From contig NIVC01000251.1 in assembly GCA_002269645.1 (NCBI GenBank), positions 310,001-374,000 on the forward strand: a DNA stretch of 64,000 bases, given 5' to 3'. Below, one piece after another: positions 45,832-50,725 of this stretch. A program made the position numbers and the translations under genes. The DNA is from Macrostomum lignano (taxonomy: Eukaryota). How positions within the stretch are numbered: the stretch's first letter is position 1; every line of letters begins with the position of its first letter. Under the pieces are notes generated by a model. That model made no database searches and had not been told where the DNA came from. It worked only from the letters and a program-made list of their open reading frames with translations.

Positions 45832-48800
45832 TTAATTGCGGTCACCGAAAAGCGACCTAAAGAATCCCAGCTGCAGCTTCCTGCCTGTCAGGAACTCGTG
45901 CTCCAGCAGCTTCTGTGCTGAGTTTCTCTCCCTGCGGTCCTTGGCGGTGCAGCGGCTGTAGAAGTCCTGCAGCTCCACTGAGCAGCCCATCGGAAGGGCT
46001 GGGGCGCCGTCACTTCTCAGCCTCTCGGGCAGCGTATGTGGCATTTTGTGCTCAGCGAAGGGCCGCCTGCCCGAGGCCATCTGGAAGACCGAGCAGCCGA
46101 ACGCCCAGACGTCCGACCCTCTGCTGTACCGCGGGCTGTCCGACTCTTCCGGTGCCAGCAGCTCCGGAGCCAAGAAGTTTAGAGTGCCTTTGGGGGTTGC
46201 TCTGGAGTCCGATATGTAACTGACTGACTGCTCCAGCTTGATTGACAGGCCGAAGTCGATCAGTTTGATTCGCGTGTTGTCAGCGCAAACAATCATGTTC
46301 GAGCAGTTGATGTCTCTGTGGATCACGGGCGGCTGCTGGCTGTGCAGGTAGTGCAGAGCGCTGCAGATCTGCAAACAGTCGGTTGGTGAGAAGTCATTTT
46401 TAAACGAACAGGGAACAGCAGGATCGAGAAGGCACGACGGTCGCTATAAGAGATCGTCTACCGAAAATTAGCGCGAAAAAGAATGGAAGAAAATTTTAAC
46501 GCTGGCTTCTAAATGATAATCTCGAGTGTCTAAAAGTAAAATAGAGCTGCTTGTACTTATATTGCTTTTTGGGGTTACTCAAGCAATAAGAATTTACAAG
46601 TATTTTATGAGCAAACAAAACACTACACACTGAGCAAATGCAGTAGCACGCTGACAGTGAAGTAAAACTTTGAATGCATGTGTTCATAGGTGGGATCCTG
46701 GTTCAGCAACTAAGATCAGTTAAAAACGAGTAAGAACTCAAAGATGATCAAAGATGCACCAACACGATTTCAAATCTCACTTTTGGACGCCAGTGTACAT
46801 TTAGAAGCTCACCTGCTTGCTGAAGTCTCGAATCGTCAACTCGTCCAATGGCCTGTTGTGAATAAACCTCTCCAAGCTTCGGCCGTCTAGCAGCTCCATG
46901 AACACAACGACTGTGGCAGGCTTCGGCTGAGCGATGTACAAGAACCTGACGATGTTGGGATGCCGCAGTCGGCACAGGTTTCTCTCGCTCTCAATAGCTC
47001 TGTGGATCTCTGTCCTCACAGAGGGCAGCTCATCACCGAGCTGCACAGGTAGATTGAGTGTCTTAGCAGCGCACCTGACGCCTGTGTCAGTGAGCACTTC
47101 GTAAACTTCGCCGAAGCCTCCCCTTCCGATGAGGCGAACTGCATGCCATCGCTCCAGATATGGGCATCTACGAGCGTATGATGGGGTTCCGGACAACTTG
47201 TAAATTATAAAGAAACGCTAGATCGATCAGATTATCTTTTAAAAGTTTTAGGAAGCCCCTCATTTAATAGATTTACACTACAAAACTTTAGTAGCTAGCC
47301 GCCTGGCTTAAAACATAGCTACCCGTATTATATCTAGAAGCAAACCAACTACCAGTATTTCGTCAATACTCCAAGCAGATCAACTCACCCTTCTGTCAAG
47401 CGGTCCAGCAGCTGCACCAACTCTAAATTTTGATGTTGCTCCGCTAGCTGCGTACAAGTCAGACCTTGACCGTCTCGATGACTCGGATCTGCTCCTTTGA
47501 GTAACAAAATCCTTGCAGCAGTCAAATGACCCGCTTCGCAAGCTCGTGACAGAGCGGTCCGACTCTGACTATCTACGGAATTCACTGATGCACCGAGATC
47601 CAACAGTTTCTCAATAAGTTCATGATAATTTCCATCTGCTGCCAGCATGAGAGCAGTGGCTCCCGTGCTGTCTGGCAAATCGACATACTCTCTGCTGAAT
47701 GTCTCGTCATTGGTCAGTCTTACGGAAAGAGTGATATGCCGCTCAGAGATACAGAGATGGAGCATCTGCGTGATCTGAGCTGGCTGCATTCTAGACTGTA
47801 CTGGAGACAGAGTGTCAGTTAAAAAAGAGTTCATGCCCTCAGTAGCCAGCGAGGCAATGAAGCTCAGGATGGGGCCAGATTCTAAGAGCCAGTCAGGCTC
47901 GAGACCAAGAAAAGCAACGATGTTTTCTTGATGGAGACGAGAGCAGGCCATGACTGCGCATCTGCGACGAAAAAGTAGTTTTGATTCCGGGCTTTGAATG
48001 CACTTTAGAACCTGTTTGATAACATGCAACTTTCGAGACTCTTCAGAAGATTCAACTGTCTCAATGCAGAAGTTAACGGTAAGATCTTGGTCAGAAACTG
48101 TTTTTATAAGAAATTCGACACCTTCCCATCGACTTTTGTCGGCAGCAGCTTTTGCTGCTTCAATGCAGCAGTAGTCTTTCGTAGCTTGGTCAGCGACTTC
48201 CTGCACAAGCAACATAGCAACTTCGAAATGACACTTTTTTGCCGCAAACTCCACTACTTTTTTGCAGCACTGATCTTTCACGGTTTGATCCGGGATTTTC
48301 TCCAACAGAATTTTAACTACTTTCAGCTCATCTTTATTTTCGTTTTGAGCAGGGTTTGCGACCGCAGTGGACTGAGCACCTCCGGTTTTTTTAGCTATTG
48401 TATCTATCAGGAATGACACCACCTCCCACTGATTCGATTGGTCGCCAATAGCATCAGAGACTGCATCAGGCATATGTTGTGCAGTTAAAGGGTCATTTGA
48501 TATCTTCAATTGAGCCAGTTGTTGTTCAGTATCGTCTGTCTTCTGAAAATAATCGAGTGTCTGCCGTCTCTCTTCCTGCATTTCACGGAAATTACATTGC
48601 TCCCAGACTTGTCTCACTTGACTAAATGTAGCCCGGTTTTCCGGGTTGACTTGAGCAGTCATGCGCATAATCTCTATAGCTTTGTCCCGCTCTTGAGATG
48701 GCTCAGGATTGCAACCAATGATCCTTCCTTGAAAGCTGTCAAAGTGTTTCCCCTCCAGCACCATCCTTTTATAATCATCCTTGGCACCTTCATCACTGAA

Positions 48801-50725
48801 GCATTCTCTGACAGAAAACTCAGCAAGAACCTCAACTACTAGGATTCCGTAGAGATATCGATCTCCGTATTTATCGGGCTGTTTGCAAGTGTCAGCATAT
48901 AATTCGGGCAATAGACGTTCGAGTCCTCTCTTCTTTTCGAATTCCCACGTGTCAGCTGTCATCACGGAATGAGGCAGACTCTTTGCCAGTCCAAAATCAG
49001 ATATCTTAAAGAAGCAAAGAGCAGGCCGTTTTATTGCAGACTTTGCTCTATCAAATTACCTGTAAATCAATACTCAAAGCTAAATTACCTTCGAATTCAA
49101 ATGACAATCGATTAGGATATTGTCAGCGGCCAAGTCTCTGTGAATGATAACCTTCTCTTGGTTCTGTCTTTCTTGAAGGTACTTAAAACCATCGGAAATT
49201 TGAAGCATCCATAGGCTTTTAAGGCGAAGACTAGGCCTTTCCTGTAAATTTTTGTGCAAACATGGTGACAGCATGATTCTAATACCCAACCCCAAAGAAC
49301 ATTCAGACATGACAGAAATACCTCCATCCGCAGCCTTTGGATTAGAAGTCGCATGCTACCGTATGGGCAGAACTCCATAGTGTAGCCAGTGATAAGGTCG
49401 GTGCTGGATGGTCCAAACGAGGTCAGTATGCGAACGAATGATTCGTGCTGACTAAGTTCTCCCATTGTTTCAACTTCCTTAGCTAGTCTCTTCTTTACCC
49501 TGAAGTTGATTTGTTTATAATGAGCGAATAATTTCGGTCTTAGAAACCTAGAGAGTTACTAGCTCTCTTAGAGAGAGAGAGAGAGATACCTACATACCGA
49601 CAGAACAGTTTTAGTAGGAAATCAGTAAATATTCTGCTGCATCCAAAAAATATTCATTTCCAAAAAGAGTTTCAGAGTTCAATAGAAATCATAACTACGA
49701 CCATGAAGCATACAACACAATGATATAAAGCATACCAAGTCTCGCTCAGTGGAGTTTCGTCAAGTAATGTTTTAGGAACAAACTTCTCCGCTTCGTTGCC
49801 ATTCCGGTGCGCCAGCCAACACTTTGCGAAAGCGCCTCGGCCTGAATTGTTTGTAAGATATCTATCTATCTATCTATCTATCTACCTATCTATCTATCTA
49901 TCTATCTATCTATTCATTCATCTATCTATCTATCTATCTATCTATCTATCTATCTATCTATCTATCTATCTATCTATCTATCTATCTATCTATCTATCGA
50001 TCTATCTATCTATCTATCTATCTATCTATCTATCTATCTATCTATCTATCTATCTATCTATCTATCTATCTATCTATCTATCTATCTATCTATCTATCTA
50101 TCTATCTATCTATCTATCTATCTATCTATCTATCTATCTATCTATCTATCTATCTGTCTATCTATCTATCTATCTATCTATCTATCTATCTATCTATCTA
50201 TCTATCTATCTATCTATCTATCTATCTATCTATCTATCTATCTATCTATCTATCTATCTATCTATCTATCTATCTATCTATCTATCTATCTATCTATCTA
50301 TCTATCTATCGATCTATCTATCGATCTATCTATCTATCTATCTATCTATCTATCTATCTATCTATCTATCTATCTATCTATCTATCTATCTATCTATCTA
50401 TCTATCTATCTATCTATCTATCTATCTATCTATCTATCTATCTATCTATCTATCTATCTATCTATCTATCTATCTATCTATCTATCTATCTATCTATCTA
50501 TTTATCTATCTATCTATCTACGTATCTATTCATCTATTTTCAATATCTATATCGCAAGCCAGTTTTTTCTTACCTATTTCTGTTTGTATTGTAATATGCT
50601 ACATGTATGCTCGCGCCAGAGTCTTGAGCTATGCGCTCTGGGTTGACGCTGATGTCCTTTTCTTTAGGAACTTTCAAAAGCGTCAATTTTTCTGGATCAT
50701 ACTCTACTCTGAAGATGATTGCCAT
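45832..50725 (-). CDS. Gene B: dual-kinase protein (TK/RIPK-like kinase, ankyrin repeats, MAP3K-like kinase); 6 exons, about 1012 aa
   Basis: Exons 50725-50574, 49547-49322, 49241-49089, 49004-47389, 47167-46813, 46368-45832; all GT-AG with matching phases (2,0,0,2,0); total 3039 nt. Start in GCCATGG context. Kinase 1: HRDLAADN, NSK/ISDFGLAK across an intron. Kinase 2: GRGGFG, CAAK, HRDINCSN, DFG, APE. Confidence 0.82.
49858..50535. repeat. (ATCT)n / GATA microsatellite in gene B intron 1
   Basis: About 670-bp near-perfect run; source of the spurious IYLS ORF. Confidence 0.98.

Follow-up and report, generated by a model that had tools for sequence, protein, structure and literature searches.

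The window analysed here is a 64,000-nt stretch of the genome of the flatworm Macrostomum lignano, and all coordinates are positions in it. Its minus strand carries a genuine spliced protein-coding gene whose product unites, from N- to C-terminus, a divergent tyrosine kinase (TK)-like kinase domain (K1), about 11 ankyrin-type repeats of 33 aa (eight cryptic and three canonical; ANK below) and a second kinase domain (K2) similar to the MEKK, ASK and WNK kinases. We find it fairly probable that K1-ANK-K2 represents a single spliced gene, a lineage-specific chimera formed by exon shuffling, in which K2 would act as the output kinase and K1 as a regulatory or pseudokinase module.

Structure of the gene and its product

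Seven exons between 50725 and 45832 (-), separated by six GT-AG introns, join in frame into an open reading frame (ORF) of 1038 aa; the boundaries were assigned by motif and the exons then joined. In the window copy this ORF (3117 nt) is uninterrupted by stops or frameshifts, and every splice site is intact. A duplicate of the locus, L001, harbours the gene of the GenBank entry PAA48300.1. The elements are as follows (a slash within a motif marks an exon boundary):

50574..50725 (-), exon 1, 152 nt: ATG at 50725-50723, about 50 aa before the kinase domain, ends in phase 2 at the donor TAG/GTAAGA
49862..50573 (-), intron 1: nearly all (GATA)n microsatellite, as read from the sequence
49736..49861 (-), exon 2: K1 G-loop GRGAFAKC and beta3 Lys (FVPK), acceptor tag/A at 49862/49861
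49322..49499 (-), exon 3: K1 from alphaC to hinge, including Met105 (MGELSQ)
49089..49241 (-), exon 4: K1 catalytic loop HRDLAADN
47389..49004 (-), exon 5, 1616 nt: K1 DFG and C-lobe (K1 to about 48579), then ANK-like cryptic repeats of 33 aa (about 48494-47703) and the three canonical ANK repeats (47702-47389); phase-2 end at GAA GG/GTGAGT
47168..47388 (-), intron 5, 221 nt: contains ATTAAA
46813..47167 (-), exon 6: K2 N-lobe (GRGGFGEV, CAAK, alphaC Glu), entered in phase 2
46369..46812 (-), intron 6, 444 nt: phase 0, at SKQ/ICS, 77 nt in the duplicate L001
45832..46368 (-), exon 7: K2 C-lobe (HRDINCSN, DFG, APE), stop TAA at 45834-45832

An AATAAA at 45833-45828 overlaps the stop codon of the gene. 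The (GATA)n tract of intron 1 covers about 700 bp (49862-50560) and corresponds to a longer array at L001.

A first-pass annotation of this DNA had proposed that the fragments are connected by phase-matched splice sites into one chain of kinase, ANK and kinase. The seven exons, the 1038-aa ORF and the Pfam domains agree with this proposal: the Pfam scan of the joined protein, which the annotation had named as a check, revealed two kinase domains (Pkinase, E 2e-72 for the two stretches jointly) together with ANK (Ank_2, E 1e-18). The top matches of the spliced product are UniRef entries of M. lignano itself, with 100%, 92% and 73% identity.

Junction of the ankyrin exon with the second kinase

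At the ANK-to-K2 junction GAA GG/GTGAGT (47389) is joined to CGTAG/A TGC CCA (47167) in phase 2, the TGA at 47387-47385 falling within the donor. Its previously proposed position proved to be exact, and the junction is present in the transcript-derived model of the duplicate locus. We accept the join as real on four independent lines: K2 has no start of its own, the transcript-based model of the duplicate crosses the junction, models from the ML2 assembly do the same, and the flanking paralogs show the same intron phases.

The K2 frame contains no ATG before VVVFMELLDG in subdomain V. The spliced leader (SL) of M. lignano terminates in ATG (PMC8629364), and SL trans-splicing was considered as a source of the K2 start; at 47167 it would give ATG ATG CCC..., which is the wrong frame and reaches a stop after about 27 codons. 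The junction is identical in four database protein models (P-numbers here and below), P0001, P0002, P0121 and P0122, among which P0001, P0002 and P0122 are independent models of the ML2 assembly. The P0001 cluster includes PAA48300.1 (BOX15_Mlig024686g1, 915 aa), and the window exon boundaries moved to L001 yield a translation that equals PAA48300.1 exactly, from Met105 to the stop. This entry was annotated from StringTie transcripts of RNA-seq data, which had been cut at trans-splice and poly(A) sites mapped by experiment; TransDecoder supplied the ORFs (PMC5730564). In both flanking paralogs, gene B and gene C, the ORF of the ANK exon stops inside the donor, a phase-2 intron lies right before the kinase, and a phase-0 intron occurs at S[KR]Q/IC.

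The two kinase domains

K2 (aa 743-1038) holds the best PF00069 stretch of the spliced protein (profile positions 2-263 of 263) and retains the G-loop, beta3 Lys, alphaC Glu, HRD Asp, catalytic-loop Asn, DFG and APE. Its closest PDB matches are MAP3K2 (E 1.5e-27) and ASK1 (6e-26), with WNK1 (5e-26) and PLK4 equally close. The view that the second kinase is MAP3K-like agrees with these matches as a likeness of sequence, WNK1 being about as near as MAP3K2 and ASK1.

K1 (aa ~52-345, with HRDLAADN at aa 186), taken alone, matches PF07714 with E 4e-25 over profile positions 7-256 of 258 and retains the G-loop, beta3 Lys, alphaC Glu, HRD Asp, catalytic-loop Asn, DFG, PE and the Arg of subdomain XI. 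By full-domain match and motifs, both domains belong to the eukaryotic protein kinase superfamily. The best sequence and profile matches of K1 are tyrosine kinases and plant receptor-like kinases (RLKs), including EGFR, FGFR3, JAK1-3 and SOBIR1, with alignments that mostly end at DFG; no RIPK is among the best 60 PDB sequence and profile matches. AlphaFold2 (AF2), applied to K1 alone with a kinase alignment supplied, gave a complete kinase fold (predicted local distance difference test, pLDDT, 84; predicted template modelling score, pTM, 0.87), which, being guided by an alignment of other kinases, demonstrates compatibility and not proof. The full-length AF2 model is uninformative on K1, which its alignment did not cover. 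In the fold search the neighbours of K1 were JAK1, IRAK4 and RIPK2 (rank 4), with indistinguishable scores.

K1 falls outside the tyrosine kinase group in the strict sense: its loop is of the AAxN type but Asp replaces Arg, and its P+1 region, RGLERLLPELY, is devoid of the Trp motif of P-[IV]-[KR]-W-[TM]-APE. The earlier description of K1 as TK/RIPK-like agrees with the AAxN loop in its TK part; its RIPK part lacks specific support, with no RIPK among those 60 matches and a fold search that does not separate JAK1, IRAK4 and RIPK2.

A HMMER search against the protein library gave 928 proteins at E<1e-30, and K1, ANK and K2 were mapped onto the best 149 of the 928, ten of which are named. Among these best 149 the ANK-K2 family represents a large M. 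lignano expansion, and the K1 family is tiny, with P0136 as its only member. The latter has a homologous N-lobe (GSFAVCHRC...ALKIF); a death domain considered at its C-terminus found no support in Pfam. A word-indexed homolog search with K1 alone gave zero matches, and the K1 family appears to be specific to M. lignano.

Ankyrin region and probable origin of the gene

A strict 33-aa period runs through aa 374-740 and keeps register with the three canonical ANK repeats, so that about 11 ankyrin-type repeats can be counted. Membership in the ankyrin repeat family is clear for aa 638-740 (Ank_2, E 4e-18; Ank, E 4e-15), and AF2 represents the middle region as helical hairpins with pLDDT 55-98. The cryptic repeats and ANK of exon 5 share 44% identity with the N-terminal halves of P0004/P0123, two proteins with a Mab-21 domain. 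In the P0123 gene (locus L002) the ANK exon ends in phase 2 at the identical residue, 24 aa after TCTQ.

The carriers of this N-terminal exon of cryptic and canonical ANK among the Mab-21 (cGAS-like) proteins are P0123 (PAA50530.1; L002, 6001-9957) and P0004/P0005. The distribution of the unit hints that it may be a sensor-like module common to nucleotidyltransferase and kinase effectors.

The gene is flanked by two tandem paralogs:

51054..52912 (-), gene B, upstream, 569 aa: exons 52912-52101, 52028-51674 and 51596-51054
40433..42671 (-), gene C, downstream, about 649 aa: exons 42671-41590, 41379-41001 and 40921-40433

Gene B consists of an exon with ANK and the QPQGAQSLA repeat, a phase-2 intron and a two-exon kinase 62-67% identical to K2. 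Gene C is similarly built from an exon with ANK and a Pro-rich repeat, a phase-2 intron and a two-exon kinase (HRDIKCSN); its homolog in L001 is annotated at 674 aa and has a unique GT-AG solution with identical intron phases. Between ANK and kinase, gene B contains a coding 42-nt (14-aa, QPQGAQSLAxQLRQ) tandem repeat (52122-52289), and L001 has 168 nt (four units) more of it (5666-6002).

We suggest that the gene is a chimera that arose by exon shuffling at phase-2 introns, in which one lineage contributed K1 and the ankyrin exon, and the local tandem family the two-exon K2 cassette. Exon shuffling is proposed because the Mab-21 gene shares the ankyrin exon, ending at the matching residue and phase, and a chimeric origin because this exon is common to the P0123 gene while the K2 cassette is 62-67% identical to gene B.

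The 5' end and the start of the product

The acceptor tag/A at 49862/49861 fits the phase of exon 1 and restores the G-loop motif GRGAF; this proposed acceptor of exon 2 is the last TAG of the (GATA)n array. Two other solutions were considered. The strong acceptor cag/G at 49842/49841 is out of frame with the phase-2 exon 1 and would need a first exon of phase 1. An alternative first exon of this phase (ATG 50750-50708) is possible, but it gives SRGAF, losing the first glycine of the G-loop. We infer the join of exons 1 and 2, and the use of both, from the sequence. The statement that four upstream exons assemble an N-terminal kinase with a TK-type loop holds, accordingly, as far as the AAxN loop is seen, and is conditional as to the exon 1-2 join.

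Several observations weigh against a complete protein with two working kinases. The catalytic loops, HRDLAADN in K1 (HRDLAVDN and HLDLALDN in its relatives) and HRDINCSN in K2, possess neither the Lys of HRDxKxxN nor the Arg of tyrosine kinases, and catalytic activity of both halves is doubtful, to judge by their motifs. The public models P0001 and P0121 begin at Met105 (MGELSQ) and so are devoid of the K1 G-loop, beta3 Lys and alphaC Glu. L001, which duplicates window 39369-56927 with about 97% identity, has no counterpart of window 49822-49761 (62 nt of exon 2), with the loss of CWLAH...FVPK and a shifted frame; the 3' end of exon 1 differs between the copies by a 684-nt indel, L001 still offering a phase-2 GTAAG donor. 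The transcript support for the junction comes from this duplicate and not from the window locus itself, and in the HMMER library search the window exon 7 was found in none of the database models. Finally, the introns (96-99.5% identity to L001) are conserved as much as the exons, and the ratio of non-synonymous to synonymous substitution rates (dN/dS) reaches 1.15 in the K2 N-lobe. The label “dual kinase”, used in the first-pass annotation, is correct for the presence of two kinase domains and uncertain beyond this, given the frameshift in the K1 N-lobe of L001, the models starting at Met105 and the two atypical loops.

The loop of K2 is a feature of a whole subfamily: the variant HRD[IL]NC.N is kept in at least 10 representative K2 paralogs, whose other catalytic residues all stay, while the more distant gene C, P0135, P0158 and P0197 retain HRDIK[CS]SN. 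The members of this subfamily include P0125-P0129, P0133, P0134, P0139 and gene B (51054-51596).

The most serious alternative, which we consider unlikely but worth retaining, is that the product starts at Met105, exons 1 and 2 being 5' untranslated region or relics and K1 a dead truncated remnant, so that the protein is effectively a single-kinase (C-lobe remnant)-ANK-K2. Two independent annotations, P0001 (100% identical to the window) and P0121, both begin with MGELSQ, and this start is in line with the exon-2 frameshift of L001, with the reliance of the exon 1-2 join on a weak tag/A acceptor ending the (GATA)n tract, and with the dN/dS of 0.5 for K1. Yet in the window neither exon 1 nor exon 2 is damaged, both are read in frame, and they supply a canonical GxGxF loop and a beta3 Lys homologous to those of P0136. 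Moreover, the first 131 nt of exon 1 are shared with L001 with four differences, three synonymous and one non-synonymous, and K1 including exon 2 is modelled as a complete kinase fold.

If the complete K1-ANK-K2 protein is produced, as we prefer to think, its ankyrin solenoid may represent a binding platform and K2 the output kinase. K1 would then not be a second enzyme with full activity but a regulatory or pseudokinase module, comparable to JAK JH2, GCN2 and the plant tandem kinases, and at least one copy of the gene may be losing the K1 N-lobe or be able to do without it.

The duplicate locus and selection

Relative to L001, dN/dS equals 0.50 for K1, 0.40 for the cryptic repeats, 0.26 for the canonical ANK and 0.44 for the K2 C-lobe. 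The residues by which the K2 N-lobe differs from L001 match those of gene B, and its high dN/dS is probably the result of gene conversion with a gene B-like sequence. Identity of the copies falls to 93.5% in exon 6 and to only 79% in exon 7, while intron 5 is identical at 220 of 221 positions (99.5%, against about 97% elsewhere). The exon-7 tail resembles that of gene B, and its L001 counterpart ends in ...EFLTGG; L001 also carries an insertion of about 3.6 kb near the 3' end, and the match to the final 66 nt of exon 7 lies about 3.6 kb farther downstream in L001. This divergence of intron 6 and exon 7 (window 45832-46812, L001 12643-13262) points to gene conversion or segment replacement combined with an insertion in one copy. 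With its intact exon 2 and gene-B-like tail, the window copy looks like the more intact of the two. Judged by these comparisons, the gene is weakly constrained and lineage-specific.

That the gene is a functionless duplicate in the course of decay, in a genome that became polyploid recently, and its architecture an evolutionary accident without a role, seems improbable to us. This reading would account for the equal conservation of introns and exons, for dN/dS values of 0.26-1.15 and for the exon-2 frameshift, the exon-1 indel and the 3.6-kb insertion of the sister copy, and extensive duplicated blocks are known in this genome (PMC5730564). However, the window copy has kept its 3117-nt ORF open and its splice sites intact, exon 7 is still open, with dN/dS 0.44, at 21% divergence from the sister copy, the catalytic motifs are kept in both domains, and the HRD[IL]NC variant is conserved across many paralogs.

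It is of similarly low probability that ANK represents an interchangeable sensor, fused in flatworms by exon shuffling either to a Mab-21 nucleotidyltransferase or to a kinase pair, and that K1-ANK-K2 is an animal counterpart of the plant tandem-kinase immune receptors; a ligand bound to ANK, or to K1 as a decoy, would then switch on the MAP3K-like K2. We are equally sceptical of a role in immunity, such as the sensor-to-MAPK relay suggested in the first-pass annotation, for which the circumstantial arguments are the domain shuffling seen in the Mab-21 ANK exon and in the caspase model P0134. This model (A0A1I8GSE8, from ML2) combines K2-like kinase domains with a caspase (Peptidase_C14) and ANK, and may be a fused prediction.

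Least probable of all is the existence of two products, a RIPK4/ANKK1-like K1-ANK protein ending at the TGA at 47385 and K2 exons on another transcript (operon-type trans-spliced or a tandem-duplicate leftover): the TGA immediately after the donor, the ATTAAA in intron 5 and the many operons of M. lignano, in which polycistronic precursors make up about 7% of the assembled transcripts (PMC5730564; PMC8629364), speak for it, but K2 has no in-frame start, the terminal ATG of the SL is out of frame, the transcript-based model of the duplicate, cut by TBONE, is continuous across the junction, and genes B and C have a like upstream ORF stopping in the donor with a phase-2 join. The ATTAAA in intron 5 could yield a short K1-ANK isoform ending in ...LTEG, and such an isoform beside the long one is possible.

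Other features of the window

The remaining features of the window are as follows:

26791-30329 (-): Polo-like kinase gene, with kinase exons (HRDLKLGN) and a polo-box exon
54120-55655 (-): single-exon ORF of 511 aa that resembles a seven-transmembrane receptor (hydrophobic segments, NPLLYACRLR near the end)
about 57800-64000: GC-rich block (56-60%), with a gag-like ORF carrying a CCHC zinc knuckle (CYSCGQPGHRNTQCP, 58777-59175) and long overlapping ORFs; probably a retrotransposon
about 4300-26700 (both strands): numerous long minisatellite arrays that look coding and have several open frames, for example 8107-8531, 10622-11517, 16900-17945, 18833-20510, 22521-23508, 24292-25655 and 26069-26651

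Comparison with known systems

If the full protein is made, it would represent a rare animal case of an ankyrin solenoid placed between kinases of two unrelated classes and a clean, datable example of a new signalling architecture generated by phase-compatible exon shuffling in a tandem cluster. The ankyrin exon common with the Mab-21 (cGAS-like) genes gives a hint that this flatworm, which is tractable and amenable to transgenesis, possesses a toolkit of sensor and effector modules. The immediate significance concerns kinase evolution and genome annotation and not a general principle of signalling; it is limited by the restriction of the gene to a species or genus, by the prior deposition of its models, by weak constraint and by the atypical catalytic loops.

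The likeness to RIPK4/ANKK1 suggested in the first-pass annotation is one of layout: in these proteins an N-terminal kinase of the tyrosine-kinase-like (TKL) type is followed by ANK, and the K1-ANK half has the same order. It differs from them in showing no specific sequence affinity to RIPK, in the loop HRDLAADN and in the second kinase after ANK. In TNNI3K and ILK, ANK lies directly N-terminal to a kinase or pseudokinase. This order resembles that of the ANK-K2 half and of genes B and C; K2, however, is MEKK/ASK/WNK-like and not TKL, and there is no evidence of orthology.

Two kinase folds per chain likewise occur in JAK (JH2-JH1), GCN2, RSK/MSK, obscurin/SPEG and the plant tandem kinase proteins (Yr15/WTK1). 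In several of these two-kinase proteins one domain is reported to be a regulatory pseudokinase or a decoy (PMC6170490, PMC10129394, PMC12867742). None of the listed proteins has an ankyrin solenoid between the kinases or combines a TK-like with a MEKK/WNK-like domain, and the homology is confined to the kinase fold. The plant tandem kinase proteins are defined by adjacent RLK-derived domains, whereas here about 400 aa of ANK lie between the domains and K2 is STE/WNK-like. Predictions from the oomycete Achlya hypogyna combine ANK with two to three kinases.

The closest relatives are found in M. lignano itself. The uncharacterised entries PAA48300.1/A0A267DG63, A0A1I8H5Q9 and A0A1I8JF65 contain the C-terminal part of K1, ANK and K2 in like order, with identical splice junctions and 92-100% protein identity over the common parts. 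All of them are without exons 1 and 2 and start at Met105 or later, while the window copy retains an intact K1 N-lobe exon. The Mlig002250 family (PAA71750.1), a transcript-based model, has about 16 ANK repeats and two Pkinase domains related to K2 (HRDIKCSN). Both of its kinases are of the K2 type and lie adjacent to each other, C-terminal of ANK, with no TK-like K1, so that its order is ANK-kinase-kinase as opposed to kinase-ANK-kinase. Literature searches returned no account of a kinase-ANK-kinase protein or of the gene Mlig024686. The earlier view that this architecture is unknown in animals is therefore valid for the papers searched but not for sequence databases, which already hold it in the entries named above, and K1-ANK-K2 is one of several multi-kinase ANK combinations in M. 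lignano.

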